Part shown: in pieces, positions 6,370 through 59,567 of the stretch
How positions within the stretch are numbered: position 1 is the stretch's first letter
Layout: each line of letters begins with the position of its first letter
Virus record (IMG/VR): IMGVR_UViG_3300030294_000005
Span: 172,185-236,184 of that record
Direction: 5' to 3' (one strand)
Length of the DNA stretch: 64,000 nt
Program-made: the position numbers and the translations under genes
Notes under the pieces: generated by a model
Database searches by the model: none
What the model was told of the DNA's origin: nothing
What the model saw: the letters and a program-made list of their open reading frames with translations, nothing else

Positions 6370-7572
6370 TTGCGTACACGTATAATAGGATTAGGTGCTG
6401 CTGGAAATAAAGCTGCAATAGCAGTTATAGAAAAAAGCATACTCAGTAAAGAGGAAGTATTATTATTCAATAGTACCATCAAGGATGTACCCGACGCTTG
6501 GAGAAGTATAGCAATACAATTTACAAATGTTAGTAGAGGCGGATGTGGTAAAGAACGACAAGCTGGAAAAGATTTATGTTTAGAATTTCTAGGTTCCGAA
6601 AGGGTCAAGCAATTGGATTCGTTTATTCAAGATGGTGAAGATAATCTAATAATAATAGTATCCTCTTCTGAGGGCGGCACTGGTTCTGGTTCTTCTGCAA
6701 TTATGGCTCAATATATCAAAGATGTTCTAGGTGCAAATGTTATGCCATTTGTATTTGATGGATTTGAGGAAGATAGCAGAGGATTACAAAATACAATAGA
6801 ATACTTTAAAGATATGCAGGATAAATATATTATTCAGGCAATATCCAATAAGAAATTCTTAGATGGTCCAAATAAATTTAAAGCTGAGAAAGCAGCTAAT
6901 GATGAATTTGCAAGACGTGTTTCAATAATAAATGGTAGTATGCTAATTGATTCAGATCAGAATATTGATGAAACTGATTTGTATAAAGTAGTAACAACTG
7001 CTGGATTTATGACTGTAGGATATACTGAGTTAAATAAAATAAAGAATATAGCTCAGTTTAATACAGTATTAACAGAATGTATTGATAATGATAAATCATT
7101 AGACATATCAACTAAATCTGCAAAAAGAATTGCAGTAATAATCAATGCAAAAGAAGAAACAAAAGATTCAATAGATTTTTCATTTAGTGTATTAAAAGAA
7201 AAATTTGGTAGCCCATATGAAATATTTACTCATGCTCAGTTTGATGAAAGTCAACCAGAATATGTAGCATTCATAGTTTCTGGATTGGAACTACCGATTG
7301 ATGATGTACAAGAAGTTTATGAAAAATATAAAAAAGAATCTGAAAAAGTTTCAAAAAGAAAAGATGGTTTCTTTGAAGCTGCATCTAAATTAAAAGGAAA
7401 TGAAATTGATGCAATGTTTAATTTAGAAGTTCCATCAAAAGAAGTTACTACAGATAGATCTAAATTTCTAAATACATTCAAGAAAAATATAAAAACTGAA
7501 ACTGTTCCTAACAAGGAAATTGATGCTAGTATAACTGATGTAAAAAATAATCAGTTTATTACTAAATACTAA
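6370..7572 (+). CDS. Tubulin/FtsZ-family GTPase (PhuZ/TubZ-like)
   Basis: IGLGAAGNK glycine loop, GGCGK, GGTGSG tubulin signature, NIDETD T7-like loop, flexible C-terminal tail; TTG start with GGAGAGG RBS. Confidence 0.9.
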   Translation: MRTRIIGLGAAGNKAAIAVIEKSILSKEEVLLFNSTIKDVPDAWRSIAIQFTNVSRGGCGKERQAGKDLCLEFLGSERVKQLDSFIQDGEDNLIIIVSSSEGGTGSGSSAIMAQYIKDVLGANVMPFVFDGFEEDSRGLQNTIEYFKDMQDKYIIQAISNKKFLDGPNKFKAEKAANDEFARRVSIINGSMLIDSDQNIDETDLYKVVTTAGFMTVGYTELNKIKNIAQFNTVLTECIDNDKSLDISTKSAKRIAVIINAKEETKDSIDFSFSVLKEKFGSPYEIFTHAQFDESQPEYVAFIVSGLELPIDDVQEVYEKYKKESEKVSKRKDGFFEAASKLKGNEIDAMFNLEVPSKEVTTDRSKFLNTFKKNIKTETVPNKEIDASITDVKNNQFITKY

Positions 7573-12486: not shown

Positions 12487-14670
12487 ATGGCAGATCCAAG
12501 TTTAATTAATAACGTTTTAGAAGCAGGAAAAAGATTAACATCAAAAGAACAAATGTTAGGTAAAGGATTGAATATGCCTTTTAACGCTCTAAATTCAGGA
12601 GCAAGAAAAATAATGTTTTCTACACAGATGGATCATCGTGTAGATTTGTTTAACCCAGAAGCCCCATTAATAAGCACGGGGTATGAAAATAGATTTGGTG
12701 AATATACATCTTCTTTTATCAAATCTGATAGTAGATATATGGTAATTGCTAAGATAGAAAAATTCTCTCATCTTCCAGGGCATCATTATTATTTAGTGTT
12801 AAAGAAGTTTGATAGTGATGAATATGAAATTATTGAGAGAGTAATGTATGAGCATGTTACTGAAGCTTACGGATATCTATATAATACAAAATATATGGAT
12901 CATCTAAAGATTGGAAGTATAGTAGAAACTAATGATGTTATACGAAAAAGCACATCATATGATGAATATGATAATAGAATGGATGGGGTTAATTTAATAA
13001 CAACATATCTATCTAATGAAGATACAAAAGAAGATGGAATTGTAGTAGCAAGGTCTGTAACTGAAAAGTTAGCATGTCCATTAATTAAGACTATCCAAAT
13101 AATAATCAATGATAATGATATACCACTTAATATGTATGGCGATGATAATATATATAAAATAATGCCAGATATAGGAGAGAGCATAAAGAAGGGTATATTG
13201 TGTGCTATGAGAAGAGAGAAAAAAGAAGAATCATTATTTAATCAATCTCTTCAACATCTTCAATCATTAATGATGTCAGATGATAAGTTTATAGCAAAAG
13301 GACAAATTATAGATATAGATGTATACTGTAATAATCCTGAGATATTAAAAGAATCATACTATGCTACACAAATAAAATATTATAGTGATAATAGTTTTAG
13401 ATTTATGAATGATATTGTAAATGTTATTAAACCTATAATAGAAGATAATGTTAATAAGTGTAGTTATGAATTACAGAAAATATATTATGATTGTAAGAAG
13501 ATAGTAGTAGATGGGAAGAAGTATATAAAAGATAAACCATTCTCTAATACTATAATAAATATAACTATATTAGAGAAGAGTGTATTAGCAGTAGGAGATA
13601 AGATATCTAATAGATATGGTGGTAAAGGAGTAGTTTCTAAGATAAGAGAAGATGATCTAATGCCATTATTAAAAGATACAGGTGAGAGGGTTGAAGTAAT
13701 ATTTAATTCAGCAACATGTATAAATAGAGAAAATATAGGTCAATTATTTGAGACATCGCTAAACGATATATCTAATAAATTACTTCATTATATGGAGAAT
13801 GTATTAGATACAGATGAATGTAATGAGATGTATAGAGATTTGGTTTATTTAACTAATAGGGAACAAGGCGAGAAGGTAGATGAATTATTATCTAGATTAT
13901 CTCCTGAAGAACAGCATTATTTCTTTGACTCTGTAATATCAGATAGTGGCATAATGCTTAGTATGAAACCTATAAGTGATCCAATGAATATTGATATGCT
14001 GTCTGCAATATATGATAAATTTCCTTATATAAAACAGCATAAGGTAACAGTGCCACAAAGGGATTCTAATGGTAATGTAAGATATCTAGAAACTAGAAGA
14101 AGATTGACTTGTGGAAAACAATATATCTATAGATTAAAACAATATGCTGAAGAAAAGTTTAGTGCGACTTCACTTTCTTCAACAAATATAAGAAATGAAA
14201 ATAGTAGAAGCTCTGCTAAAAAATCTTATAAAACAATATTTACAAAAACTCCAATAAGATTTGGAGAAATGGAATCTGGAAACTTATTACATCTTGGTGC
14301 AGAAAATGTAGTTATTAACTTATTACTATATTCCGCATCTCCTAAAGGAAGAAGACTTGCTGAAGAATTATTAATTGGTAATCCGTTTGATATAAATGTT
14401 AAATTGGACGACCAATCTACAAATAGAGGTGTTGAAATTCTTAATGCATATTTATTAACAATGGGATTAAGAATAGAATTTGTAAAAACACAAAAAACTA
14501 AAAAAGCACCTATTAAGTTTACACCTATTATAGTTCCAGCAAATAGAACTCCAATACGATTTGTTAATCCAGATGATAAGATGATTAAAGAGTATCTAGA
14601 TAATTTTGGTAAGAAATCAAAATCACCTATTAAATTTGTTCCAATATCATTTGTAGGAAGGACTGATTAA
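12487..14670 (+). CDS. Non-virion RNA polymerase beta subunit, C-terminal half
   Basis: NSGARKIMFSTQ, EDGIVV, GDKISNRYGGKGVVS, RENIGQLFE, YIYRLKQ, PIRFGEME. Confidence 0.92.
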   Translation: MADPSLINNVLEAGKRLTSKEQMLGKGLNMPFNALNSGARKIMFSTQMDHRVDLFNPEAPLISTGYENRFGEYTSSFIKSDSRYMVIAKIEKFSHLPGHHYYLVLKKFDSDEYEIIERVMYEHVTEAYGYLYNTKYMDHLKIGSIVETNDVIRKSTSYDEYDNRMDGVNLITTYLSNEDTKEDGIVVARSVTEKLACPLIKTIQIIINDNDIPLNMYGDDNIYKIMPDIGESIKKGILCAMRREKKEESLFNQSLQHLQSLMMSDDKFIAKGQIIDIDVYCNNPEILKESYYATQIKYYSDNSFRFMNDIVNVIKPIIEDNVNKCSYELQKIYYDCKKIVVDGKKYIKDKPFSNTIINITILEKSVLAVGDKISNRYGGKGVVSKIREDDLMPLLKDTGERVEVIFNSATCINRENIGQLFETSLNDISNKLLHYMENVLDTDECNEMYRDLVYLTNREQGEKVDELLSRLSPEEQHYFFDSVISDSGIMLSMKPISDPMNIDMLSAIYDKFPYIKQHKVTVPQRDSNGNVRYLETRRRLTCGKQYIYRLKQYAEEKFSATSLSSTNIRNENSRSSAKKSYKTIFTKTPIRFGEMESGNLLHLGAENVVINLLLYSASPKGRRLAEELLIGNPFDINVKLDDQSTNRGVEILNAYLLTMGLRIEFVKTQKTKKAPIKFTPIIVPANRTPIRFVNPDDKMIKEYLDNFGKKSKSPIKFVPISFVGRTD

Positions 14671-14671
14671 A

Positions 14672-16960
14672 ATGAATGACATAATAAGGAAAGTTTTAGA
14701 TGAAGTAAGACAAGGGAATAAAACTTTTCTTACTGATTTAGAAACTATGAGTAAGATAAACTCATATGTAGAAATGGTAATAAAATCAAATACACATTCC
14801 AATGATGATATAGAAAATATGAAAGGTATGTTAGAGATTTCTAACATACTTTTTAATAACACAGATAGAGATTTTATATTATTAGAGGATGGGGTATATG
14901 ATTTATTAATTGAAAAATGTAAAAAATATGATCCAAATTATTTAGTAGGAGCAAAACCTGTTTATTTTGCTCCTACAAATAATGACTCATTGACTAAACT
15001 AAAATCAAAAGTTATAAGATTTGTTGATCAAGATAAGATAGATGATATGTTATATGGAAATGATATATTCAAATATGAAGAAATAAAAAGAACTGATATA
15101 TTGAAGAGTCCAATAACATTTAAGAATACTGATGTGATAGCTAAGAGAGTAGTAAATACAAAACATAACTATCCAAAATTAGTAGGGACTTTAGATAAGG
15201 GTAAATTTGTATTAAGTTCTCAAGCAAAAGAAAAAGGTGTATATGATGATAATAATGTAAAAATATTAGAAAGGGATTTCTTTAAGAAACATATAGATGA
15301 TGGAATCTTAGATCCAAATAGAAAGTTCTATATAGTTGCAGAATTAAAATATGATGGAATTTCTGTTGAAGGAGATGTTACAAATCAGATAGAAGGAGGA
15401 AGAACTAGAGGAGATACAAATGAAGATATTGCAGCTGACCTAACTCCTATATTAAGAGGTTATAGATTTAGATATGCTCCAATGATAGATGAAGCTTTTG
15501 GGATGAAATTTGAAGCTATAATGACTCATAATAATTTAGCAAAATATAATGTAATCAAACAGAAAGATTATAAGAATTGTAGAACTGCTATCTCTGGATT
15601 ATTTGCATCGTCTGATGCTCCACAGTTTAGAGACTTTATAACATTAGTACCTTTAGCAACTTCTATAGAAGACATTGATAGACTTTCTGAAATAGAATTT
15701 ATGAATAAGTATTACAATTCTGGAGAAAGATTAAGATATTCAGTATTGTATGGTAACTATGTAGATATACTATTTCAGATAAAGAAATTTGTAGAAGAGG
15801 CAGAATATCTTAGACCATATATGCCTTTCATGTATGATGGAGTAGTGATATCTTATATAGAACCAGATCTCATAGATAAACTTGGAAGAGTAAATTCTGT
15901 TAATAAATATTCAATGGCAGTAAAATTTAATCCACTTAAGAAACAAGCAATATTTATAGAATACAGATATACCGTAGGCCAAGATGGTGTAATAACTCCT
16001 ATGATTTATTATACTGCAGTAGAGTTTTATGGCACAACACACAATCATTCTTCTGGTCATTCATATGAAAGATTTAGAACTTTGGCTTTAAGAAAAGGTG
16101 ATATAATAGATGTAGAATATGTGAATGATGTTATGCCATATGTATCAAAACCAGATAATTCACATAATCTAGAAAATACAAATCCAGTTGAAGTATTTCC
16201 TACAAAATGTCCTTCATGCGGAATAGTGCTAGAAATATCTGAATCAGGTAAATCTGCATTATGTTCTAATATGGCATGTAAGCAAAGAAATATAGCTAGA
16301 ATAGTGAGTATGTTAAAGAAATTAAATGTTAAAGATTTCTCAGATGCTTATTTGTTACAGATAGGTAAATATACATTATCGGATATGATGAATCTATCTG
16401 TAGATGAAATACAATTCTTAGGAGAGATTACTTCACAAAAGTTTATAGAAAGAATGAATCAATTAAAATTACAACCTATATATGATTATAAGATTATAGG
16501 AAGTCTTGGATTTACAGATATAGGTGTTAGAAAATGGAAGTTAATATTAAATAAATATACATTAGATGAGATACTATCTTTTACAGAAGAGCAACTAAGA
16601 GATGCTTTATTAAATATAAAAGGTATAGGTCCAGCTACTGTAGATACTATAGTATCAGAATTTAAATTCTTTAAGGCAGATATAGATACTATACTTAAGA
16701 TGCCTAATATACTAAAGTCTAAAGGAGTTAAGTCGGGTAAGTCTATAAGATTTACTGGATTTAGAAATGAAGAATTAGTAAATACTTTAAATGATATGGG
16801 ATATGATGCAAATGGAGATAGTGGTGTTACAAAATCAACAGATATATTATTAGTTCCATTTGAAGGTTACACTAGTCCTAAGACAGTTAAAGCATCAGCT
16901 AATAATATTATGATAATTCCTATAAATGATTTTACTAATAATATGGATAAGTATTTATAA
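14672..16960 (+). CDS. ligA: NAD-dependent DNA ligase
   Basis: ELKYDG adenylation motif, TRGD, DGVV, AVKF, VGQDGVITP, Cys4 Zn finger, HhH KGIGPA, BRCT-like IRFTG. Confidence 0.93.
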   Translation: MNDIIRKVLDEVRQGNKTFLTDLETMSKINSYVEMVIKSNTHSNDDIENMKGMLEISNILFNNTDRDFILLEDGVYDLLIEKCKKYDPNYLVGAKPVYFAPTNNDSLTKLKSKVIRFVDQDKIDDMLYGNDIFKYEEIKRTDILKSPITFKNTDVIAKRVVNTKHNYPKLVGTLDKGKFVLSSQAKEKGVYDDNNVKILERDFFKKHIDDGILDPNRKFYIVAELKYDGISVEGDVTNQIEGGRTRGDTNEDIAADLTPILRGYRFRYAPMIDEAFGMKFEAIMTHNNLAKYNVIKQKDYKNCRTAISGLFASSDAPQFRDFITLVPLATSIEDIDRLSEIEFMNKYYNSGERLRYSVLYGNYVDILFQIKKFVEEAEYLRPYMPFMYDGVVISYIEPDLIDKLGRVNSVNKYSMAVKFNPLKKQAIFIEYRYTVGQDGVITPMIYYTAVEFYGTTHNHSSGHSYERFRTLALRKGDIIDVEYVNDVMPYVSKPDNSHNLENTNPVEVFPTKCPSCGIVLEISESGKSALCSNMACKQRNIARIVSMLKKLNVKDFSDAYLLQIGKYTLSDMMNLSVDEIQFLGEITSQKFIERMNQLKLQPIYDYKIIGSLGFTDIGVRKWKLILNKYTLDEILSFTEEQLRDALLNIKGIGPATVDTIVSEFKFFKADIDTILKMPNILKSKGVKSGKSIRFTGFRNEELVNTLNDMGYDANGDSGVTKSTDILLVPFEGYTSPKTVKASANNIMIIPINDFTNNMDKYL

Positions 16961-16976: not shown

Positions 16977-17303
16977 ATGGATTATAAAAAGGCAAGTGAA
17001 ATATTAACACAAGCTATTAATTATGACGAAGAAGGCAGAGTAGGAAAAGATAATTGGATATTAGGAACAGAAGATATTGAGGTTATTAAAATAGCAATTG
17101 AAGCACTTAAAAAATCAAAAGAGATATCAATATCAGATGCAATGAATATAATTAAAAATGCTTTAAAAGAAGATAAAACAGAAGGTAGTTATTATTATTC
17201 ATGGCAAAGTAATATTGCTTGTTCAATCATGGATAATTCAAATTTAGAGCATGATAAAGCTAATGAAATATCTATCAAATTTTTAGAATCGTTGATAAGA
17301 TAG
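16977..17303 (+). CDS. hypothetical protein
   Basis: AGGAGGT RBS places the start at MDYKK (16977) rather than 16926. Confidence 0.6.
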   Translation: MDYKKASEILTQAINYDEEGRVGKDNWILGTEDIEVIKIAIEALKKSKEISISDAMNIIKNALKEDKTEGSYYYSWQSNIACSIMDNSNLEHDKANEISIKFLESLIR

Positions 17304-17352
17304 TATATATTTTATGGTAAATATCTATAAAAAAGTGGAGGAAAGATATTAA

Positions 17353-17493
17353 ATGGGTGGTAGATATGAGGTCAGATTTGAAGACAAAAAACAGTTAGAT
17401 GGTTATATGTCAACATATACAAATAGTTGGTTTGAGTTTATGAAATTAAGGCTTATTAAAAAAGTAATTTATTATAAGGTTTTTATTTCATAA
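17353..17493 (+). CDS. small hypothetical protein (46 aa; not in ORF track)
   Basis: GGAGG RBS; MGGRYEVRFEDKK...KKVIYYKVFIS. Confidence 0.55.
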   Translation: MGGRYEVRFEDKKQLDGYMSTYTNSWFEFMKLRLIKKVIYYKVFIS

Positions 17494-17566
17494 TTCGAAT
17501 ATATTATAAAGTATAATAAACTTATTGATTGGGAATAAGTACTATTTATAAATTTACAAACTATTA

Positions 17567-17590
17567 AACATAATTATAATTATATATTAT
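17567..17590 (+). promoter_or_regulatory. Overlapping AACA-N6-TA and AATTATATATTAT promoters
   Basis: AACAtaattaTA at 17567-17578 and AATTATATATTAT at 17578-17590. Confidence 0.6.
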
Positions 17591-17631
17591 TATTATGTAT
17601 AAAAATAATATTATAAATTTCAAGGAGGAAT

Positions 17632-18228
17632 TTGATTATGAATTTTAACGAATCTACAATACCAATGATTTATGCACAGAAGATGGGTGAAGCAGACCTC
17701 GATTGGGATGCTAATTGGACAAGAAAAATTTATGAAGTTGTAGTAACAGGAATATCTGACTTTTTGGCTTTAGCTAAAAGTAAAAATAATAAGGTTGCAG
17801 TTGCAGTAAGGGATCTAAAAGGTAATTTCTTAATGGGTGCTATCGTAGAATATCATAGTAATGAGAATGAAGATATGCCAGGAAATTGGTCATATGAGTT
17901 TTCATTTGATGAGAAAGATTTGGAAGGGGCTACAGTATACTTAACTACTGATACACAGTTCCAGAAACAGTTATCGGCAACAGCTTATAACCTTCATAGG
18001 ATTCAGTTTGAGATGGAAATACACATAGAAACCATTATTGAATTATGCGTTTCTATATTAAAGCAATGGCTTGATATGAATGCTAAAGAAGCTGAAGAAG
18101 TAAACATAGAGCTTATTGGTTATTTTGTAGCATCTGTTGCAATTGAAAATGGAGAAAAAGTAATAGCTATTATACCTGATGGAGCAATGAAACGTCTTAT
18201 TAAAGATGATGCAGCTCTAGAGGAGTAA
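17632..18228 (+). CDS. hypothetical acidic protein
   Basis: AAGGAGG RBS; first gene of the nvRNAP beta-N operon. Confidence 0.75.
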   Translation: MIMNFNESTIPMIYAQKMGEADLDWDANWTRKIYEVVVTGISDFLALAKSKNNKVAVAVRDLKGNFLMGAIVEYHSNENEDMPGNWSYEFSFDEKDLEGATVYLTTDTQFQKQLSATAYNLHRIQFEMEIHIETIIELCVSILKQWLDMNAKEAEEVNIELIGYFVASVAIENGEKVIAIIPDGAMKRLIKDDAALEE

Positions 18229-18241
18229 TAATTAAACTCGT

Positions 18242-18916
18242 ATGTTTTTGCATACGAGTTTATTTTTAATAAAAAGGTGGATGATTATATATATGGACAA
18301 AGCGAGAATAAATAATAAAATATATGATATCATTACTGATGACGAATATAAGAATAATAAGAATTTGTATGATCCTTCATTCACTGCAATAAAGAAAGAA
18401 GGAACAATATATCCGTTAAGAAAAAAGAAAGATACAAGTCCAGGGTACTATGATTTAGGAGTAATAGGATTTTATGTTTCTCCATCAGATGATGAAAAAG
18501 ATTTATATAATAGTATAAATAGTATAAACTTTTCTGACTCTAAATCTATTAAAGATATAATAGAGAAGAGTGATAACTTAAAAGAAATTGAAAAAGATAT
18601 ATTAACTACAGCAGATAATATATTTATTCCTAAGATAAAAGAAAACGATGAACCTGAAATGATTGCACTTAAGGAGTCAGTCATTTCTAAGAATATAGAC
18701 ATTGGTAATTACGAACATAGGTTTGGAGGAAAATATAATAATGATATCAGAATTTTTCAAGACAATAGTATAACTTTATTTAAGTTAAAGAAATTTGCTG
18801 ATGCATTAGACTTGAAGTGTACATTAACAATAGAAGATAAAAATCCAGATGTTGCAAATCCTATGAATAGAGCTGTGACAGTTGTATTAAACGATGGAGA
18901 TGATATTGATGAATGA
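18242..18916 (+). CDS. hypothetical protein (possible C-terminal HTH-like segment)
   Basis: Real start probably MDKAR (about 18293); ITLFKLKKFADALDL resembles the end of an Xre-type HTH. Confidence 0.6.
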   Translation: MFLHTSLFLIKRWMIIYMDKARINNKIYDIITDDEYKNNKNLYDPSFTAIKKEGTIYPLRKKKDTSPGYYDLGVIGFYVSPSDDEKDLYNSINSINFSDSKSIKDIIEKSDNLKEIEKDILTTADNIFIPKIKENDEPEMIALKESVISKNIDIGNYEHRFGGKYNNDIRIFQDNSITLFKLKKFADALDLKCTLTIEDKNPDVANPMNRAVTVVLNDGDDIDE

Positions 18917-20642
18917 TGACATAACTCAAAGAAATTTCATCAAATATTTTACTGATGAAAATAGAGAACATTTTAATGAACAATTATTTTATAGAAATGA
19001 AGATGATATAATAGAAGATATTAAGAAGGTTATATTATCATGTCAGAGAAGCAGATACTTTGTTTTAAGAGTTCATCAATTTAAAGTAGTAGATGATTAT
19101 AATGAGATTATGCAAATCTTATATAATTATGAAGAAAATCTAAATAGGAACAAGACTAAGAAGAGAGATAATCAATATGATTTTGTAGACTTAAAAGTTA
19201 CAGATATGAAATTATTGATAGTGACTTATTATATAGAAGCTAAAGAAAAATTTGAATATGTTGATGTCATTATAGCAGTTCCTAGAATAGTTAATAAGTA
19301 TTACTTTAGAATATCTGGAAATATATATTCAGCATTGTTTCAGTTAGTAGAGAGTACTTATAATAGTTCAACTTCAGCAGCTTCAAGAAAAGATAATATT
19401 ACATTAAAAACAATATTTATGCCTATTAGAATATATAGAAATAATGTATCCTTATTGACAACTTCTAATGAGGATGTAAAATGTGTATTCTATACAATAA
19501 GAGTATTTAATAAATCTTTCAATTCAGTAAAGCCATTCTTAGCAAGAGGTGGATTTTATAATGGTATGGCATATTTAGGATTGAAGTATATTTCAATAAC
19601 AGAAACAGATCCTAATGATAAAGATTTATATACTTTTGAAAAACATGGCCTATTTGTAAGTGTACCGAGATATATATTTGATAGTGATGCATATACACAA
19701 TCGTTTGTATATGGATTAATTGCCGCAATAAATAAAGAATGCACATATTCAAATATATTCTCTAAATACTATTGGCTTAAAATGTTAGGTGAAGATTTTA
19801 ATAATTCTAGTGTGGATAAAGGAGTATCAATATTAGATTCTTTAGAGTCAGTATATGATATATTGACAAAAGAAAGTCTTCATCTTCCAGAATATCAGAA
19901 ACAAAATATTTATGATATTCTAAAATGGTTATTAAGAGAATTTTCAAATCTAAAATCTAAAGATAATTTAGATGTTACTGTAAAAAGAATAAGGTTCTCA
20001 GAATATATTGCATCGCTGTATGCAATGAAACTATCTACTGGTATCTATAGAATATCGGATAATAGAAGGAAGAATATAAACATAGATAGTATAAAGAGAA
20101 TAATAAGAATACCACCTATGTATCTTATAAGTGCAATAACTAAATGTAATTTAGTAAACTATAGAAATTTGGTTAATGATTTAGATTCTACTTTAGCTTT
20201 AAAATATTCTAGAAAAGGTATTTCTGGAATGGGAGATCAGAGTAGTAAATCAGTACCTAAAATATACAGATATATAGATTCGTCTAGTATAGGTATATTT
20301 GATTTAGATGATTCACCTAAATCCGACCCAGGAATATCTGGTACAATAAGTCCATTAGTTAAATTAAGTAATTGGTCTTTTTCAGATTATAGTGAACCAA
20401 ATGAATGGGAAGCTGGATTTAAAGATTTGACAAAGAACTATAAAGCATTAGTTGGTAAGAAAGAAGTAATAACTCTTCAAAAAGAATTATTAGATATAGA
20501 AAATGAAGAGTTAGAAAATATAGTAGATGACTCTATATATGCTGTAAAAGAATTAATGTCAGCTATAAGATTTATAGAAGATGATGTTATTGAAGATACA
20601 GACATAGATCCTAATATGGTTGAAGAGGAGGATTTATTATAA
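18894..20642 (+). CDS. Non-virion RNA polymerase beta subunit, N-terminal half
   Basis: AVPRIVNKYYFRISG (cf. RpoB IP....GTFIING), KYSRKGISG, YRYIDSS..G..DLDDSPKSDPGISG (cf. RDVHP.HYGR.CP.ETPEGPNIGL). Confidence 0.82.
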   Translation: MEMILMNDDITQRNFIKYFTDENREHFNEQLFYRNEDDIIEDIKKVILSCQRSRYFVLRVHQFKVVDDYNEIMQILYNYEENLNRNKTKKRDNQYDFVDLKVTDMKLLIVTYYIEAKEKFEYVDVIIAVPRIVNKYYFRISGNIYSALFQLVESTYNSSTSAASRKDNITLKTIFMPIRIYRNNVSLLTTSNEDVKCVFYTIRVFNKSFNSVKPFLARGGFYNGMAYLGLKYISITETDPNDKDLYTFEKHGLFVSVPRYIFDSDAYTQSFVYGLIAAINKECTYSNIFSKYYWLKMLGEDFNNSSVDKGVSILDSLESVYDILTKESLHLPEYQKQNIYDILKWLLREFSNLKSKDNLDVTVKRIRFSEYIASLYAMKLSTGIYRISDNRRKNINIDSIKRIIRIPPMYLISAITKCNLVNYRNLVNDLDSTLALKYSRKGISGMGDQSSKSVPKIYRYIDSSSIGIFDLDDSPKSDPGISGTISPLVKLSNWSFSDYSEPNEWEAGFKDLTKNYKALVGKKEVITLQKELLDIENEELENIVDDSIYAVKELMSAIRFIEDDVIEDTDIDPNMVEEEDLL

Positions 20643-20643
20643 A

Positions 20644-20868
20644 ATGATAAAATATTTTATATTTTCAAGAGAACAATTAAACATGAAAAGAAACGTCGCT
20701 AAAAAGATAAGCCAGGAATATACACCTGGCTCTGTATTTATGGGAAATAAACCAAAAGAATTTACTGATATGATAGATGACCCGAAGTTAGCAAAGTTCT
20801 CCGATTCTATTGTAATTATCAGTGGTGATCCAACTACTATTAAATATAAAGCAGGAAGTGATTTCTAA
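20644..20868 (+). CDS. hypothetical protein
   Basis: GGAGG RBS, start at MIKYF. Confidence 0.6.
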   Translation: MIKYFIFSREQLNMKRNVAKKISQEYTPGSVFMGNKPKEFTDMIDDPKLAKFSDSIVIISGDPTTIKYKAGSDF

Positions 20869-21173
20869 TGTGTAAGAAAGTTATATCAATACTTGGTCCT
20901 ACTGAATGCCCACATTGTCACTCTGCTTTAGTGCTATATAGGGAACAAACAACATCAGTTGGTTTAGATAAAAATGGAAATGGTATACCAACTGATAATA
21001 ATATGTTTGAATATGAGGAAGTATTAAAATGTGAAAATTGTTTTAGTAAATTTCCATGTATACAATTATCTAATGGTAGATATACAATCTATACTGATTT
21101 ACAGATGAGACTAGATATATATAGAACTGTAGCAAGTATAAATAGAGTAAGAAGTCCATTTATAAGGAGTTGA
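20868..21173 (+). CDS. Zn-ribbon protein
   Basis: CPHC ... CENC. Confidence 0.65.
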   Translation: MCKKVISILGPTECPHCHSALVLYREQTTSVGLDKNGNGIPTDNNMFEYEEVLKCENCFSKFPCIQLSNGRYTIYTDLQMRLDIYRTVASINRVRSPFIRS

Positions 21174-21177
21174 TTAA

Positions 21178-21780
21178 ATGAATATAGAATTTAAAACTAT
21201 GTTTAATGTAATATATGGTAGATTGTTTGGAGACTTTCAAGCTTTAACAACTGAGATTCATCCAGATATATTAAAAATAATAAAAGTTACTCATGGTAAA
21301 ACATTGGATGGAAAAATGTTTTCATTAAAACTTGAGAATGGTGTAGATATTTATATAATAAAAGAATTAAATTCTTTTATATATATGAATAGTCTGTTCG
21401 TAGATAATAAAAGATCTGTGGTATGTAGTATACCATATGACTTATATAATTACGATCAAAAAGAAATAGTAAAAATAATTAAATCGCTATACACATATAT
21501 TTGTAATCAATTGATTACAAAACCAGGAGATACATTATATAATAAAATTACAAGTATAGCTCCCACAATATTAACATTTCATACATTAAGACATGTATGT
21601 GAAGATTTAGAAATAGTTGATTTTATAGATAATGATGATAACTTTAAAGAAATAACGGTAGAAGTTTTATATGATTCATTAGACTATTCTATAAATGAAC
21701 TATTAGATTACTGTGGAATATTTGCAATCTGTACTGAGAAAATAGAAAAAGAAGTTAATGATGAAGATAAAGACGATTAG
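21178..21780 (+). CDS. hypothetical protein
   Basis: AAGGAG RBS; operonic. Confidence 0.65.
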   Translation: MNIEFKTMFNVIYGRLFGDFQALTTEIHPDILKIIKVTHGKTLDGKMFSLKLENGVDIYIIKELNSFIYMNSLFVDNKRSVVCSIPYDLYNYDQKEIVKIIKSLYTYICNQLITKPGDTLYNKITSIAPTILTFHTLRHVCEDLEIVDFIDNDDNFKEITVEVLYDSLDYSINELLDYCGIFAICTEKIEKEVNDEDKDD

Positions 21781-22051
21781 TTTTAAGCGTCAAGATCATT
21801 GTGTAAAATGTAATGCAGATAGATCCATAGAGCTATATGATATATATGATAAACCAATAAATTATTCATATTTTCTAGATAGATTAAATAGCGTAAGTTT
21901 AGATAGTTTTAATCGACGAGAGTTATCTTATATGCAATGCAAAAAATGTGGTGTTGTATATGATATAACTTGGGAGAATAAAATACCAGAACCATTGATT
22001 AATAAGAATACACTATTCATATTTTTGAATAGTGTATTTAAAAAAATATAA
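21758..22051 (+). CDS. Zn-finger protein
   Basis: CVKC ... CKKC; N-terminal KTISF. Confidence 0.65.
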   Translation: MMKIKTISFKRQDHCVKCNADRSIELYDIYDKPINYSYFLDRLNSVSLDSFNRRELSYMQCKKCGVVYDITWENKIPEPLINKNTLFIFLNSVFKKI

Positions 22052-22067
22052 ATACTAGGAGGATAAT

Positions 22068-22376
22068 ATGATTAATTGTTTAACAAATAGTCAACTATTA
22101 AAGATGGCAGAAATTAATGAAAAAAATAAAGTAATTGATAAAAAGATAAATGATAATATAAATAAAAAAGTAAATTTTCTTAAGAAAAAACGTCCACATC
22201 TAACTGAATTTGAATTAAGTGAATATAGATTAGAATTGATAAGTGAGTCAAAACCTATAAAGATACTTAAAGAAGAGCTTGAATTTAACACTCATATCAT
22301 AGAATGTTTTAAATGTAGAAATAAATTAATTAGTATGATTGGAGAAGATGAAGTAAAACTTATTTTATTAAAATAA
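22068..22376 (+). CDS. hypothetical protein
   Basis: AGGAGG RBS; terminator at about 22378-22405. Confidence 0.6.
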   Translation: MINCLTNSQLLKMAEINEKNKVIDKKINDNINKKVNFLKKKRPHLTEFELSEYRLELISESKPIKILKEELEFNTHIIECFKCRNKLISMIGEDEVKLILLK

Positions 22377-22422
22377 TAAATAGGAGAGATTACTCTCCTA
22401 TTTTATTTTTTATTCTTATTAT

Positions 22423-22434
22423 AACTTTATAGTA
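22423..22434 (+). promoter_or_regulatory. AACT-N6-TA promoter variant upstream of SbcC
   Basis: AACTttatagTA just before the GGGAGG RBS. Confidence 0.5.
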
Positions 22435-22450
22435 AGGGAGGTGATTACTT

Positions 22451-25156
22451 ATGAAAATATTATATATTAAATTAATCAATTATATTGGAATATATAATGG
22501 ATTAGGATTAAATGAAATAGAGATAGATTTATCACCAAGTATGTATAAGACTGTAATAATACGAGGAAAGAATGGAAGTGGAAAATCTACATTATTTAAT
22601 GCATTAAATCCTATGTATGATTCAAATGATAATTTTATACCAAAATTAGAAGCTCATAAATATATAACTATATTAAATGATAATATTATTTATAAGATTC
22701 ACTTTATTCATCCAGTTAAACAGAATGGAGAAAGAGATACAACTAAAGCATATATTAAAAAATATTATAATAATGAAATTGAAGATTTAAATGATAATGG
22801 AAACGTATCTAGTTTTAAAGAAATATTATATAATGAACTTTCATTAGATAATAACTTCTTAGCTTTAAGTAGTTTAGGATCTGAGAATAAAGGTTTAGCT
22901 GATAAGAAACCTATGGAAAGAAAGAAGTCTGTCATTTCTATAATAAGTTCATTAGTAGTATATAATGATATATATAAAACATTAACAAAAAGAACATCAA
23001 TATTTAAAGCAATGATAAACAATCTGACTAGTAAGATAGATAATATAGGTGATGAAGATAAGATTAAAGCATCATTAATATCTATAGAAACTAGATTAAA
23101 TAATCTTATGAGTGAAAAGGATAATATCATAGAAGGATTGTCATCTTGTAAATCTACTGTAAAATTAATAGATCCAAACAATACTATACAAAATACTTAT
23201 AATCAAATATATAGTGGAATCAATAACTATAATACTATGTATACAAGTATAACAAATTCAGTAAATAAATATTATAATATATTAAAATTAGAAGAGTCGA
23301 TTAGTTATAACGATGTGATAAATCGTTATAATATAACTAAAGAAAATTTAGACAAGCTATCTACTAATGTGCAAATAATGGAATCAAATATATCCATTCT
23401 ATTAAATGAACGTGAAAATATATTATCAGATATGCAAACTAAAAAACAAAAATTAAACTCATTAGAATCTGTTGGTGCTATAGAAGATATCAAATCTAGT
23501 ATTTCTATATATGAAGATGATATTAGAAAGTATAAAGATATAATATATAAGATAGGATTAACTGATATGAACATTTCTAGAGATGAATATATATTAGCCC
23601 TAAATACATTAATGGATATTAAGAATACAATAAGTATATTCAAATCTAATTTAAATTTAAGTACAATAGAGAGATCTATTAATTATATAAGAAATAATGA
23701 CTTTCCTAATATAGACAAATTGGATAATGATATAATTAATATTAATGCTCTTATAAGAGAACAAGAAATATTATATCAGAAGTTTTCTACAATTAAAGAG
23801 ATATCAGAGAAGATACAATTACGTCCATTAGGATGTAAAATAAATGATTGTCTATTTATTAAAGATTCATTAGAAGCATTGGAACAGAAGCCTGATCAAA
23901 ATCTTATTATAATAAATAAATTACTATTAAAATATAATAAGTTATTAAAATCTAAAACAGAAGAAAAAGTATCAACAAGAGATATCATAGAGTGTATAAA
24001 CTATTTGAATACAGTATTAAGATCTATAGATATAAATAGTAAAATATTTAGAAAGCTTAAGATAGGACAAGAGTTTTGTGATAAAGATAAAGTACTAACT
24101 ATGATTTTAAATGGTTATAATTTTGATATAATTGATGAGTTATATAAATATATAGACTATGCTAATGTAATAGATGAGTATAGGTCTAAGACTAATTTAC
24201 TTATTCAATTAAAAAGTGATCTTAATATTTATAATAGTAAGCATGATATAATACAAGATCTATCTGATGACATAAATAAAATGAGAATAAAAGTAAATGA
24301 TATGACTGATAATATATCAAATATAAAAAGTAATATAGATGATTATAAAACCAAATATTCTATTTTGAATATAGCTATAGATAATTATAATGTCTTGATA
24401 AAAAATCTTAATGATAAATTAAATATAGAATCTAAAAAGATTGAATTGATATCACAATTTAATGCAATAAAATCTAGTATGATATCAATAAAGCAATCAC
24501 TAGATAATATTCAGGAATACAACTCTAAACTTGAAAAGACTAATAATGAAATAACCCCACTAATAGAGGACAGAGATAAATTAAAATATGGATTAACTAT
24601 GCTAGTCGAATATAAGAAAGAGTTAATTATATATAATGCAAAATATGAAAAGATTGAATATATTAAAAAACAATCATCTCCTAATAAAGGAATACAGACT
24701 TTATTTATGGAGTTATATATGAATAAAATACTAAGTATGTCTAATGAGTTACTATCATTATTATTTGATGGAGAATATATATTATGTCCATTTATAATTA
24801 ATGAAAATGAATTTAGAATACCATGTAGGGGTACTGGATTACAAAATGATGATATAAGTTCTACATCATGTTCTCAAAAAGCTATGATGGGGTTAGTAAT
24901 AAATGCATCTCTATTATGCCAAGCATCTACTAAATATAATATATTAAAATTAGATGAGTTAGATGCAGGATTGGATACTAGTAATAGATTACAGTTTCTA
25001 TATACATTAGATAGGATATCTGACATATTAAATATAGAACAGACTTTTATGATAACTCATAATACTGAGGTAGACTTGAGTACTTGTGATATTATACAAC
25101 TTAAGAAAGTTGATGGAGAATCTATTTCTGATAATAATATTTTATATGAATACTAA
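22451..25156 (+). CDS. sbcC: SbcC/Rad50-like SMC-family ATPase
   Basis: Walker A GKNGSGKS, long coiled coil with central CKINDC hook, degenerate signature SSTSCSQ, Walker B/D-loop LDELDAGLD, ITH. Confidence 0.88.
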   Translation: MKILYIKLINYIGIYNGLGLNEIEIDLSPSMYKTVIIRGKNGSGKSTLFNALNPMYDSNDNFIPKLEAHKYITILNDNIIYKIHFIHPVKQNGERDTTKAYIKKYYNNEIEDLNDNGNVSSFKEILYNELSLDNNFLALSSLGSENKGLADKKPMERKKSVISIISSLVVYNDIYKTLTKRTSIFKAMINNLTSKIDNIGDEDKIKASLISIETRLNNLMSEKDNIIEGLSSCKSTVKLIDPNNTIQNTYNQIYSGINNYNTMYTSITNSVNKYYNILKLEESISYNDVINRYNITKENLDKLSTNVQIMESNISILLNERENILSDMQTKKQKLNSLESVGAIEDIKSSISIYEDDIRKYKDIIYKIGLTDMNISRDEYILALNTLMDIKNTISIFKSNLNLSTIERSINYIRNNDFPNIDKLDNDIININALIREQEILYQKFSTIKEISEKIQLRPLGCKINDCLFIKDSLEALEQKPDQNLIIINKLLLKYNKLLKSKTEEKVSTRDIIECINYLNTVLRSIDINSKIFRKLKIGQEFCDKDKVLTMILNGYNFDIIDELYKYIDYANVIDEYRSKTNLLIQLKSDLNIYNSKHDIIQDLSDDINKMRIKVNDMTDNISNIKSNIDDYKTKYSILNIAIDNYNVLIKNLNDKLNIESKKIELISQFNAIKSSMISIKQSLDNIQEYNSKLEKTNNEITPLIEDRDKLKYGLTMLVEYKKELIIYNAKYEKIEYIKKQSSPNKGIQTLFMELYMNKILSMSNELLSLLFDGEYILCPFIINENEFRIPCRGTGLQNDDISSTSCSQKAMMGLVINASLLCQASTKYNILKLDELDAGLDTSNRLQFLYTLDRISDILNIEQTFMITHNTEVDLSTCDIIQLKKVDGESISDNNILYEY

Positions 25157-28162: not shown

Positions 28163-30091
28163 GTGATTGATATGATTAAAAATTATCCAGCTGGGAGCAA
28201 TTTAACAATATTAAATACAATATATTTATATCCTACAAAAGACGAAAATGATAAATGGTCAAAAGATAAATTACTTATAATATTTAAAGATAATGTTACA
28301 GGAGAAAAACATTATGAAGAAATAGAAACTCCTGATTATGAATTTTATATGGCAAAATCAGATGAGTTTATAGATCATAATTTATTATTTATTGAAAAGG
28401 ATAAAGTTGATAAAATATCCACTCCATATAATTCTTTAGCTAAGAAGGTTGCTGAATTAACAGGTAATACAGAATTTTATTATGATAATATAAGAAATGG
28501 GAATAGATATGCAAATAATAAATTGTATACCCATCCTAAAATATTTATGGCAGATCAAAATATAGAAGATCATTATAGATTTAGATTTTCTAATACTTAT
28601 CAAAATCCTATAATACAAGTATCTAAAGCATTCTTTGATATAGAAGTGGATACTATTAAAATGAGAGGAGATTTTCCAGATATGGGAGAATGCCCAATCA
28701 ATGCTATAAGTGTAATTAGTGAAGTTACAAATAAAGTATATATATTTTTATTAAGAAATAAAGAAAATCCATTAATACAAGAATTCGAAGATTCAATTGA
28801 TGATGAATTATTTAAAGAATTAAAAGAATTTGTTAAAGCTAATGTTGGTGGATGGAAGAATGAAAAAAGAGCAGGCTTAGATGAGTTAGATTATGAATTT
28901 ATGTTTTATGATGAAGAAATAAAATTAATTCAAGATTTATTTATATTATTTAATACAACTAAACCAGATTTTATATTAGTTTGGAATATGGCATTTGATA
29001 TGACATATATTATAGAAAGAATAAAGATGCTAGGATATAACCCAGAAGATATAATATGTCATCCAGATTTTAAAACTAGAACTGCACAATATTATAAAGA
29101 TACTAGAAATGAGAATGATTTTAGTAAAAGAGGAGATAGTGCAATAATTAGTTCTTATTCGGTATATATGGATCAACTAATTAGTTTTGCATCTAGAAGA
29201 AGGGGACAACATGCTTATCCAGATTATAAACTTGATACAATAGGTAATATAATTGCTGATGTTGGTAAATTAGATTATTCTGATATAACAACAAGTATAT
29301 CAAAATTACCATATTTAAATTATAAAGTATTTGTATTCTATAATATTATGGATACAATTGTTCAGAAATGTATAGAGAATAAAACTGCAGATGTAGAATA
29401 TGCATTCAATAAATGTTTAATAAATAATACTAGATATAGTAAATGTCATAGACAAACTATATATCTTGTAAATAGAGGTGTAAAAGAATTTTATAAAGAT
29501 GATTTCATTATGGGATGTAATAATAATAAATATAATGAAAAATCAGAGAAGTTTCCTGGAGCATTTGTTGCAGATCCTAGTAAAGTAGATGCGTATGGTA
29601 AAATAAAAATAGCAGGTAATCCTATTAATGTAATGAATAATCTTGATGATTTTGATTATAAAGCTCTATATCCAAGTCTAATGAGAGAATTTAATATGGC
29701 ACCTAATACTCAGATTGGTATTATCAATATACCAAATCAAATATATAATAATGAGAATAGATTTAATAGAGAAATATATAGTAGAGGTTCTGCTTTTATA
29801 GAAGATTTACAGTCTCAAGTTTATCTAGAATTCTGTACAAGATGGTTACATTTTGCAGATTATGGATCATTATATAAAGATGTTATAGAATACTTTACAA
29901 CTGAAGCTAACCCAGGAAGAGCATTGAAATGGTATAATGATAAAAATCAGCAAGTAGTATTAAGATTTATTAACAATAATGCTAAACAAAAAGTTATATC
30001 ATTTAATACAAATGATAAACAAAGAATAATAGATTTTAATTATATTCATGATTTTACTACTGTTAATGATCATTTTCAAAGGAGATGCTAA
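28163..30091 (+). CDS. Split family-B DNA polymerase, part 1 (3'-5' exonuclease + palm motif A)
   Basis: ExoI FDIEVD, ExoII WNMAFD, YKLDTIG, ExoIII YNIMD, FPGAFV, motif A DFDYKALYPSLM; motifs B and C are absent. Confidence 0.9.
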   Translation: MIDMIKNYPAGSNLTILNTIYLYPTKDENDKWSKDKLLIIFKDNVTGEKHYEEIETPDYEFYMAKSDEFIDHNLLFIEKDKVDKISTPYNSLAKKVAELTGNTEFYYDNIRNGNRYANNKLYTHPKIFMADQNIEDHYRFRFSNTYQNPIIQVSKAFFDIEVDTIKMRGDFPDMGECPINAISVISEVTNKVYIFLLRNKENPLIQEFEDSIDDELFKELKEFVKANVGGWKNEKRAGLDELDYEFMFYDEEIKLIQDLFILFNTTKPDFILVWNMAFDMTYIIERIKMLGYNPEDIICHPDFKTRTAQYYKDTRNENDFSKRGDSAIISSYSVYMDQLISFASRRRGQHAYPDYKLDTIGNIIADVGKLDYSDITTSISKLPYLNYKVFVFYNIMDTIVQKCIENKTADVEYAFNKCLINNTRYSKCHRQTIYLVNRGVKEFYKDDFIMGCNNNKYNEKSEKFPGAFVADPSKVDAYGKIKIAGNPINVMNNLDDFDYKALYPSLMREFNMAPNTQIGIINIPNQIYNNENRFNREIYSRGSAFIEDLQSQVYLEFCTRWLHFADYGSLYKDVIEYFTTEANPGRALKWYNDKNQQVVLRFINNNAKQKVISFNTNDKQRIIDFNYIHDFTTVNDHFQRRC

Positions 30092-58274: not shown

Positions 58275-59567
58275 TAAATATGAGGTGCGTTATACAGTAA
58301 TGTATAATTGAAAACTCTGTGAACTGCTGGGAGTCCCTAAGAGCTTAATATACTACAACGTGATCTGTAAAGATGAGCGTGAATGTGGTCGAAAGACAGA
58401 AAGAAATATTAAGATAAGGTATGGTGAGAATCCTAACTCTTATAAACAATGGGTAATCATAGCAGCCAAGCTGCCAATTATAATAAAAGATGATATATCA
58501 CTAACTTTATATTTATTAAGAGGTGATATTAATGAAAATTATTAGTTTTTTAAATAAAGAAGACGAAATGCCTATATATTGGTATAAATTAAACTGTGAT
58601 AATATTAAGGATAATTTATATGAAATATCAGAAACATCTGAAATTAGATCTGCTAAAACAAAGAAAATATTAAAACAAAGAAATCATAAATCTAGAAGTA
58701 GTAGTTATAAAGACATAGCATTAAGTACAAATATTATTAAAGGTAAAAGTTTTTTAGTTCATAGATTAGTAGCTAAAACTTTCATTCCTAATCCATACAA
58801 TAAACCTGAAGTAAATCATAAAAATTATGATACAAAGAAAAACTATTGTGATAATTTAGAATGGATGACACATAAAGAAAATGTAGAATATTCTAAAAAT
58901 AATATAAAAAGAGGAGAAGATAATATAAATTCATCTTTAACAAATGATCAGGTTTATAAAATATGTAATATGCTACAAGAAAATAAATCTTATAGTGAAA
59001 TATTATTTAATATAGGAATGGAAGATAGTGATAATAATAGAGATACTGTAGGTAATATTAAACGAGGTATAACTTATAAAAATATATCTAAACAATTTAA
59101 CTTATCTAATGCTAATGCAAAATCTTCTAAATATGATATAAATACAATTAGAGATATATGTAGATATATATTTAATGGATATGACTATATAAAAATAGCA
59201 GAATTAATAAATGAGGATATTTCAGATATAAATAAAAAGAAATCATTTTATGAATTTATTCGTCTTATTAAAAATAGAAAAAATTATAAAGATATATCAT
59301 CTGAATATAATTGGTAGAAGGTTCAACGACTATCGAAAGCTATAAATCCATAAGAACTATTAATTTAGCAGGGTTGAAAATAAGGTATAGTAATGTATAC
59401 ACGAAGTGAGTAGAGTACACTAGAAGTCTAGTGGAAGTGCAGAGCGTCCTAGTAAAATAGGATGAAGATATAGTCTCTTCTTCGTATGAAAGTACGAGCA
59501 TTCTAAATAAATGATATATAGTGAGAGTATAATATTCATTATACAACGACTATATAGTAAGATTAAG
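58275..59567 (+). mobile_element. Group I self-splicing intron in DNA polymerase motif B
   Basis: 5' exon ends in U and pairs aacgcu/ggugcguu (P1); core elements gaactgctggga, gttcaacgacta (59321) and gaagatatagtct (59464); terminal G at 59567; splicing restores KLDANA|LYGSIG in frame. Confidence 0.9.
58532..59317 (+). CDS. Intron-encoded HNH homing endonuclease (NUMOD4/HNH type)
   Basis: YEISETSEIRS, VHRLVAKTFIPNP, VNHKN..KKN...NLEWMT..EN; GAGGTG RBS. Confidence 0.9.
   Translation: MKIISFLNKEDEMPIYWYKLNCDNIKDNLYEISETSEIRSAKTKKILKQRNHKSRSSSYKDIALSTNIIKGKSFLVHRLVAKTFIPNPYNKPEVNHKNYDTKKNYCDNLEWMTHKENVEYSKNNIKRGEDNINSSLTNDQVYKICNMLQENKSYSEILFNIGMEDSDNNRDTVGNIKRGITYKNISKQFNLSNANAKSSKYDINTIRDICRYIFNGYDYIKIAELINEDISDINKKKSFYEFIRLIKNRKNYKDISSEYNW

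Follow-up and report, generated by a model that had tools for sequence, protein, structure and literature searches.

A multi-copy array of a putative genome-wide docking tag at the C-terminus of a giant phage RNA polymerase subunit

[quoted passage not shown] The same motif is found on the ends of the DNA polymerase, helicases, ligase and other DNA enzymes of the phage, while each related phage uses its own version of it. This distribution points to an undescribed recruitment system, in which the tail may act as a multivalent copy of a lineage-specific docking or address tag. Literature searches found no description of such a tag.

The window analysed here is a stretch of 64,000 nucleotides, positions 172,185 to 236,184 of IMG/VR record IMGVR_UViG_3300030294_000005, within a 236-kb phage genome. 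The open reading frame at 12487-14670 (+) encodes 727 amino acids and ends in LNAYLLTMGLRIEF VKTQKTKKAPIKFTPIIVPANRTPIRFVNPDDKMIKEYLDNFGKKSKSPIKFVPISFVGRTD directly before the stop codon. It is the homolog of AR9 gp089, with 33% identity over residues 1-673 by tblastn, a Pfam RNA_pol_Rpb2_6 (PF00562) match at 4.7e-14 and 1472 metagenomic homologs, and the NRYGGKG and RFGEME motifs are invariant in 120 homologs. Homologs of AR9 gp105, gp270, gp154 and gp226, representing the partner subunits (beta-N, beta'-N, beta'-C and gp226-like), were found in the same genome by tblastn and mapped to the AR9 annotation. Given that the last clade-wide conserved columns are N653, Y655, G660, F665 and K667, the extension starts at about residue 666 (nt 14482). 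The tail, the copies of the motif elsewhere in the window and the genes that carry them are as follows.

12487-14670 (+), gene for the nvRNAP beta subunit, C-terminal half (AR9 gp089 homolog)
14482-14667 (+), C-terminal extension, residues 666-727, a tail predicted to be disordered that carries the tag array
14482-14508 (+), basic linker VKTQKTKKA; a KxPKK-type basic stretch follows the last beta element in most homologs
14509-14535 (+), unit 1, with cores PIKF (residues 675-678, nt 14509-14520) and the degenerate PIIV (680-683, nt 14524-14535), 5 residues apart
14551-14577 (+), unit 2, core PIRF (689-692, nt 14551-14562) followed by the acidic stretch VNPDD; its position-specific matrix (PSSM) score of 15.1 is the second highest in the genome
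14581-14616 (+), short predicted helix KMIKEYLDNFGK (699-710), part of a clade-wide DExFDPxY... acidic/helical spacer that is conserved regardless of the tag word
14626-14652 (+), unit 3, with cores PIKF (714-717, nt 14626-14637) and PISF (719-722, nt 14641-14652), 5 residues apart
15011-15121 (+), same tag in the N-terminal extension of the NAD-dependent DNA ligase (gene 14672-16960), KSKVIRFVDQD (residues 114-117) and KSPITFKNTD (residues 147-150); the ligase orthologs of all 5 compared genomes carry their own genome's word at the same place
20562-20573 (+), same tag near the C-terminus of the nvRNAP beta N-terminal half (gene 18894-20642, AR9 gp105 homolog), SAIRFIEDD; orthologs carry the local word in 4 of 5 genomes
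29993-30004 (+), tag-like VISF near the C-terminus of the DNA polymerase exonuclease/N part (gene 28163-30091, AR9 gp132 homolog); orthologs carry 1-3 copies of the local word at the C-terminus
58538-58549 (+), weak tag (MKIISFLN) of borderline score at the N-terminus of an HNH endonuclease (gene 58523-59317); other HNH genes in this genome and in G002, a genome used for comparison, carry clear copies
60258-60269 (+), tag-like KKLKAISFLETD in an internal stretch of the DNA polymerase catalytic part (gene 59511-61241, AR9 gp152 homolog); orthologs carry the local word internally
63946-63957 (+), same tag at the C-terminus of the nvRNAP beta' C-terminal half (gene 61909-63975, AR9 gp154 homolog), NKKVIRFVEDPK directly before the stop codon; its PSSM score of 15.8 is the highest in the genome

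From proteome composition, the probability of four or more PIxF in 62 amino acids is about 1e-10, and no other open reading frame in the window has more than one strict copy. AR9 and Staphylococcus phage SA1 have no equivalent of the extension. AlphaFold2 modelled it with a pLDDT of 40-55, no fold of its own and helix 699-710 as the only secondary structure, and a folded five-strand mini-domain was rejected because no sheet was predicted. In relatives, tandem pairs occur at the same places as units 1 and 3, giving a shared 2+1+2 layout, and the core dipeptide recurs 3 or more times in 96 of 119 tails. We also considered whether the tail could be a cis-acting extension that binds nascent RNA or DNA or packs on the polymerase surface, because it has a net charge of about +9 in this phage and the beta C-terminus of cellular polymerases generally lies close to beta'. 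However, the charge is not conserved (the tail of a related genome, G001, is net acidic), AlphaFold2 with 120 sequences gave no contact to the body, and this reading does not explain the genome-wide tag, making it very unlikely.

To see if the motif is specific to the polymerase, we counted it across the genome. [PV]I[KR]F occurs 15 times against 3.0+-1.6 in shuffles, and 10 of these copies lie within 30 amino acids of a protein terminus against 0.8+-0.9, while reversed and neighbouring motifs stay at background. A PSSM scan found 24 sites in 18 proteins, 18 of them terminal, and the tag reads roughly (K/R)x(P/V/A)I(K/R/S)F(V/I)(D/E) in this genome. It sits directly after Met1, directly before the stop, or in a disordered extension of three other nvRNAP subunits (beta-N, beta'-C and the gp226-like specificity subunit), and it also marks both DNA polymerase halves, the DnaB-like helicase, SbcD, an SF2 helicase, NAD ligase, RNase H, a Dam methylase and HNH homing endonucleases. 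By contrast, virion RNAP subunits, virion proteins, UvsX, primase, gyrase A/B, GroEL, a RecD-like helicase and beta'-N are untagged.

These results bear on the preliminary description of the tail, which had proposed an nvRNAP beta extension of four PI(K/R/S)F repeats acting as a multivalent, heptad-CTD-like tether. The identity of the gene, the nature of the roughly 60-residue tail as an add-on with no predicted fold, and its multivalency were supported. However, the heptad-CTD-like part was not supported, because the start-to-start spacing of the copies is 5, 9, 25 and 5 residues with no heptad or other constant period, the tail is on beta rather than beta', and neither the S/T-P context nor phospho-acceptor residues are conserved in relatives. 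Most importantly, the same word sits on about 17 other proteins, including the replisome. Small Zn-ribbon proteins of the operon could be factors landing on such a platform, but they carry the motif themselves rather than a reader domain. An RNAP-specific platform for transcription or RNA-processing factors is therefore very unlikely, and the tail behaves as a multivalent ligand for a shared receptor.

We next asked whether the word changes in concert across related phages, which keep the tail architecture but use other words (GMxY, PFxI, PMxF and PFIH among them). In a 5x5 matrix of tail word against genome with beta excluded, only the diagonal was enriched, with terminal observed/expected values of 25/7.0, 17/0.4, 22/2.8, 10/1.4 and 9/0.3. 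An unbiased search for gapped 4-mers in protein termini, again with beta excluded, returned the tail's word as the top hit in 4 genomes (p from 3.5e-7 to 1e-18) and found nothing in AR9, which also lacks the tail. Three more distant complete genomes use further words (IAxRV, DAV and KVMxY) on the same orthologs. Orthologous carriers are conserved across genomes, and mapping to AR9 names them.

A DNA-level element, such as a promoter or regulatory repeat for the abutting ligase gene, or chance was also considered, because the ligase ATG lies one base after the beta stop and short direct repeats are present. However, synonymous codons at the sites follow genome usage and nearly every 12-mer is distinct, indicating selection at the protein level. 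The DNA repeats in the tail are only 14-19 nt long and 79-89% identical, the sites are always in frame at protein ends, and the words differ between genomes while the protein positions stay the same, so that this explanation is contradicted by the data. Recent gene conversion was likewise rejected because the copies differ at synonymous sites.

Taken together, we favour, with somewhat better than even confidence, a reading in which the tail is an intrinsically disordered array of three units holding five cores of the phage's own terminal docking tag. That relatives keep the same client set but use a different word suggests that all copies are read by one fast-evolving, phage-encoded receptor. 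We infer that the tag may be an address and retention signal, bringing each tagged polypeptide to the site where phage DNA is replicated and transcribed, either a compartment or condensate-like factory or its gate, with the five copies on beta-C giving the large polymerase high avidity for that site. The separate tagging of four of the five nvRNAP subunits, the repeated carriage of the resident word by selfish HNH endonucleases and the fast diversification of the word favour an address tag over a mechanical tether. In addition, some genomes encode a tubulin/PhuZ-like gene, and a Whirly-fold protein with a ChmC-like layout (PMC11077065) is present in 34 of 36 genomes. However, everything rests on sequence statistics because no phage of this clade is cultured, AR9-type phages are not known to build a compartment, the tubulin gene is present in only some members, and several of the untagged enzymes (UvsX, primase, gyrase A/B, the RecD-like helicase and beta'-N) must also reach the DNA. 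No receptor was found: one complex prediction of tail residues 664-727 with three clade-specific, untagged proteins (the Whirly-fold 257-aa, 297-aa and 224-aa proteins) scored 0.07, which is not evidence either way, and differential genomics (core in 6 near-complete genomes, absent from AR9, untagged) left about 17 candidates. These three proteins have no match in cultured phages, atlas look-ups of the 224-aa and 297-aa proteins were uninformative, and only about 28 of 80 loci gave a clean automatic tag call, with few independent switches. A further and more tentative possibility is that these phages use the peptide as a linear password licensing proteins for access to a replication and transcription compartment or factory, with each lineage having its own password and resident homing endonucleases copying it; this would be the first sequence-encoded targeting signal for a phage-built organelle.

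If the address-tag reading holds, a 7-9-residue peptide predicts which proteins of a giant phage work on its DNA and gives a handle for finding the receptor that organises replication and late transcription. The concerted change of the word across about 20 proteins would be a rare natural case of a whole interactome re-coding its docking motif. For annotation, the tag already assigns unknown ORFs (small Zn-ribbon proteins, gp242-like, p255 and p142) to the DNA-transaction machinery.

Given that terminal tags are typical of degrons and chaperone signals, the tag could instead be recognised by a chaperone, assembly factor or protease controlling folding, assembly or turnover of the replication and transcription proteins. 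The genome (handle G000) encodes a GroEL homolog (G000 20971-22674, matching AR9 gp228) and an HExxH protein (G000 17112-18266). However, AR9 has the GroEL and protease homologs but no tag system, the clients are a functional class of DNA and RNA enzymes rather than a folding class, and five copies on one subunit fit a degron poorly, making this explanation unlikely.

A less favoured but still possible alternative, which we regard as doubtful, is a hub-binding motif of the clamp or SSB type that tethers clients to a DNA-bound processivity or maintenance hub, with the five copies on beta-C coupling late transcription to replicating DNA. One of the closest parallels is the T4 sliding clamp, in which a short hydrophobic terminal peptide is shared by the gp43 polymerase and by the RNAP-associated gp33 and gp55, all binding gp45. 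Clients with 1-3 tandem copies and the clade-specific Whirly-fold nucleic-acid binder would be compatible with such a hub. However, no hit for DnaN, T4 gp45, PCNA or clamp-loader AAA+ families (PF00712, PF02916, PF00705 and PF13177) was found in the 95%-complete genome, although a clamp recognisable only by fold, or the host clamp, is not excluded. In contrast to T4, the tag here is on RNAP subunits themselves in up to five copies and on about 18 proteins. Separate tags on four subunits of one enzyme are not needed for a tether, and HNH endonucleases are unusual clamp clients.

The PIP-box, the bacterial clamp-binding motif and the SSB C-terminal tip hub also involve a linear motif in disordered termini, and their clients (polymerase, ligase, RNase H, helicases, methylase and SbcCD) overlap strongly with the carriers here. 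The core pattern hydrophobic-x-hydrophobic-hydrophobic after P/G resembles QLxLF, but the consensus QL[SD]LF or Qxx[LIM]xx[FY][FY] is not matched. Known clamp motifs are conserved across phyla, whereas this word is replaced between phages whose beta subunits are 45-57% identical, and in the SSB system the peptide is on the hub rather than on the clients.

In selective import into the chimallivirus phage nucleus (ChmA shell, PicA/Imp1, ChmC/Imp6), the set of proteins that must reach the phage DNA is the same (helicase, ligase, RNase, nvRNAP subunits) while virion proteins stay out (PMC13282480), and recognition is fast-evolving. By contrast, chimallivirus import is reported to use surface patches and no terminal signals (PMC13282480), sequence searches of the genome found no homolog of chimallin (phiKZ gp54) or PicA/Imp1 (gp69), and hhalign of the Whirly family against phiKZ gp67 (ChmC) gave a probability of 0.8%, so that no homology is claimed. 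Cargo-targeting peptides of protein compartments (encapsulin cargo-loading peptides, microcompartment encapsulation peptides and the T4 capsid targeting sequence) are likewise short N- or C-terminal peptides, sometimes repeated, shared by all cargo of one shell. Here no shell was identified, the cargo are replication and transcription enzymes, and virion-packaged proteins such as vRNAP lack the tag. Finally, the tail resembles the RNA polymerase II CTD only in being a disordered multivalent tail on an RNAP subunit, and it differs in its position on beta, in having no fixed period or conserved phospho-sites, and in sharing its motif with many non-RNAP proteins.

[quoted passage not shown] The last clade-wide conserved columns (N653, Y655, G660, F665 and K667) are followed by 62 residues, VKTQKTKKAPIKFTPIIVPANRTPIRFVNPDDKMIKEYLDNFGKKSKSPIKFVPISFVGRTD. 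The four PI(K/R/S)F copies named in the preliminary description are positioned at residues 675, 689, 714 and 719, while a fifth, degenerate copy (PIIV) is at residue 680. Given the composition of the phage proteome, the probability of four or more PIxF in 62 residues is about 1e-10. By contrast, AR9 gp089 ends about 20 residues after the equivalent point in an acidic stretch without repeats, and the Staphylococcus phage SA1 protein likewise has only an acidic helical end. AlphaFold2 modeling with 120 homologs gave a well-modeled enzyme body, while the tail received a pLDDT of 40-55 with only one short helix (residues 699-710). The presence of the extension is therefore confirmed, and the tail is a lineage-specific, probably disordered add-on. 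However, the copies are spaced by 5, 9, 25 and 5 residues, and the tail is thus not a heptad array.

The protein has 1472 metagenomic homologs, and the best 120 of them are nearly all 712-778 aa in length, so they have a tail as well. Their tails share one layout, consisting of a basic linker, a tandem pair of cores, a single core followed by acidic residues and a 'DExFDPxY' helix, and a final tandem pair. The core word differs between homologs (PI, PV, VM, AI, PF, PG, GV, PL, AM, AF and others) but is the same in all copies within one protein. Among 119 tails, the hydrophobic core dipeptide recurs at least 3 times in 96 and at least 4 times in 59, with more than 25 different cores being found.

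To see if this word is private to the polymerase, we examined the 295 mechanically called ORFs of the 236,184-bp virus record in which the window lies. [PV]I[KR]F occurs 15 times against 3.0±1.6 in shuffled proteins, and ten copies lie within 30 residues of a protein end against 0.8±0.9, while the reversed motif and six neighboring motifs stay at background. A position matrix iterated from these sites found 24 sites in 18 proteins, 18 of them terminal. Many sites sit directly after Met1 (MEVIKF, MKIIKFVE and MRKVISFVN) or directly before the stop (KPIRFIE, RVIKFVI, NVIKFV and KKVIRFVEDPK). The carriers were named through Pfam/PHROGs and through mapping to the annotated AR9 genome, and those with coordinates in the window are the following.

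12487-14670 (+), nvRNAP beta-C, whose tail is described here
15011-15121, two copies in the N-terminal extension of the NAD ligase next door
18894-20642, nvRNAP beta-N (gp105 homolog)
28163-30091 and 59511-61241, the two halves of the family-B DNA polymerase
58523-59317 (+), an HNH homing endonuclease, with a weak copy of borderline score
61909-63975, nvRNAP beta'-C (gp154 homolog)

The further carriers are the gp226-like specificity subunit, the DnaB-like helicase, SbcD, an SF2 helicase, RNase H, a Dam methylase, other HNH endonucleases and several small proteins. The two genes of the family-B DNA polymerase are about 30 kb apart, as in AR9 (gp132 and gp152), and the catalytic part has an internal insertion that carries the tag. 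HNH homing endonucleases (window 58523-59317 (+); L002:128-955, L002 being a stretch of this phage genome, G000; and 93265-93936 and 172582-172896 of G002, a related genome) repeatedly carry the resident genome's tag at one end (KEKPIRFIE before the stop here, PFxI in G002), suggesting that selfish elements adopt the local word. By contrast, the virion RNAP subunits, virion proteins, terminase, UvsX, primase, gyrase A/B, a RecD-like helicase, SbcC, GroEL and nvRNAP beta'-N are untagged. Elsewhere in the genome, L002:14295-15236 encodes a 313-aa protein with a roughly 200-residue extremely acidic (pI 4.1), D/T/N-rich disordered N-terminal part and a helical C-terminal domain. It may be a scaffold-like protein. 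It lies just upstream of a 561-aa ORF that may be the major capsid protein, an assignment inferred only from the position of this ORF next to the AR9 gp118-like zincin gene.

Two further features were noted around the nvRNAP beta-N gene. A 224-aa ORF (window 18242-18916 (+)) with weak HTH-like features, whose end overlaps the start of the beta-N gene by 23 nt, is present in 78 of 80 related loci and absent from AR9 and cultured phages, and may be an nvRNAP-associated factor. Just downstream of the beta-N gene are small (92-129 aa) CPxC...CxxC zinc-ribbon proteins (window 20868-21173 and 21758-22051 (+)) with orthologs in the related genomes G001, G002, G004 and G005, and in relatives they carry the local tag 4-5 residues before the first Cys knuckle (for example MLKRGMIYLDANQCPNC).

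We then compared tail words across phages by using four related contigs fetched whole. With beta excluded, each tail's word is enriched at protein ends only in its own genome, the terminal observed/expected values being 25/7.0 for [PV]I.F, 17/0.4 for GM.Y, 22/2.8 for PF.[IV], 10/1.4 for PM.[FI] and 9/0.3 for PF[IV][RH], while off-diagonal cells of this word-by-genome comparison are near expectation. An unbiased scan of all gapped 4-mers in protein termini, again without beta, returned the tail's word as the top hit in four genomes (p from 3.5e-7 to 1e-18) but found nothing comparable in AR9. The extended consensus is 7-9 residues in length (LIRGMxY(D/E), xIINPFIHx(D/E), LY(C/T/Q)PFxI and LI(E/D)PMxF), and the carriers are the same ortholog groups in every genome, some with two or three tandem copies at roughly 10-residue spacing. 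Three more distant complete genomes (G023, G032 and G027) also have the system with yet other words. In G023 the word is I(A/V)xR(V/I)P, which is present three times at the DnaB C-terminus and also on the helicase, SbcD, polymerase, gp226-like protein, ligase and beta tail, while G032 uses (I/V)DA(V/I/M) and G027 uses K(K/E)V(M/I/L)x(Y/L). The C-termini of nvRNAP beta-N orthologs in G005, G023, G027 and G032 additionally carry a second conserved peptide, (G/S)(L/V)P(L/V)(D/E)GSGxIxYE before the stop, that is independent of the lineage-specific tag. Finally, neighbors of beta show the local word as well in the ±10 kb loci of 80 relatives.

Synonymous codons at the sites follow genome-wide usage and nearly every 12-mer is distinct, while DNA repeats inside the tail are only 14-19 nt in length and 79-89% identical, and the sites are always in frame at protein ends. 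A regulatory DNA repeat and recent gene conversion are therefore excluded. The ligase ATG starts one base after the beta-C stop (TAA A ATG, window 14668-14674). There is no intergenic promoter space, and the two genes are probably translationally coupled.

Given that about 20 proteins change their terminal word together, we infer that all must be read by one fast-evolving partner, which is most simply phage-encoded, and that the tail is thus a multivalent ligand for a shared receptor. The evidence is entirely computational, no phage of the clade being cultured, and the receptor, the binding and any compartment are inferences. Two models fit. In the first model, the word is an address or retention tag for the place where phage DNA is replicated and transcribed. 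This is favored by the separate tagging of four of the five nvRNAP subunits, by the resident word carried repeatedly by selfish HNH endonucleases, by its absence from virion-bound proteins including vRNAP, and by its password-like diversification. Some members also encode a tubulin/PhuZ-like protein. In the window this is a 400-aa protein (6370-7572 (+)) with a sub-threshold Pfam Tubulin/FtsZ GTPase match (2e-6; 28.5 bits, below the 33-bit gathering cut-off), which is present in G000, G001 and G002 but was not found by sequence in G005, AR9 or phiKZ. In addition, a 257-aa clade-wide protein (L002:19138-19911, outside the window), present in 34 of 36 related genomes and absent from GenBank phages, has an AlphaFold2 model with a Whirly/PUR fold, the best PDB neighbors of which are T. 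brucei MRP1/2 and plant WHY1/2. It has a G/N/S-rich disordered tail ending in an acidic tip, the same layout and the same structural neighbors as reported for the chimallivirus nucleus-associated RNA binder ChmC (PMC11077065). However, hhalign does not link this protein to phiKZ gp67, sequence searches found no chimallin or PicA homolog, UvsX, primase and gyrase are untagged, and chimalliviruses are reported to use no terminal signal (PMC13282480). By contrast, in the second model the word is a clamp- or SSB-type hub tether, as in T4 late transcription. The client list and the terminal position are in favor of this model, whereas sequence searches of the genome found no clamp and no clamp loader, and such a rate of motif turnover is unknown for clamp motifs. 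We tentatively rank the address tag above the hub tether.

We found no description of such a tag in the literature searched. Shared docking motifs are already known, but if the address-tag model is right, the tag would be a categorically new feature for phages. By every feature tested the tail is a member of the gp089 family, and it is not a CTD-like heptad array. Apart from demonstrated binding, the motif fits the definition of a short linear motif. With its receptor inferred, it would work like a PIP-box, a clamp-binding motif or a cargo-targeting peptide, but it fails the consensus and partner tests for each.
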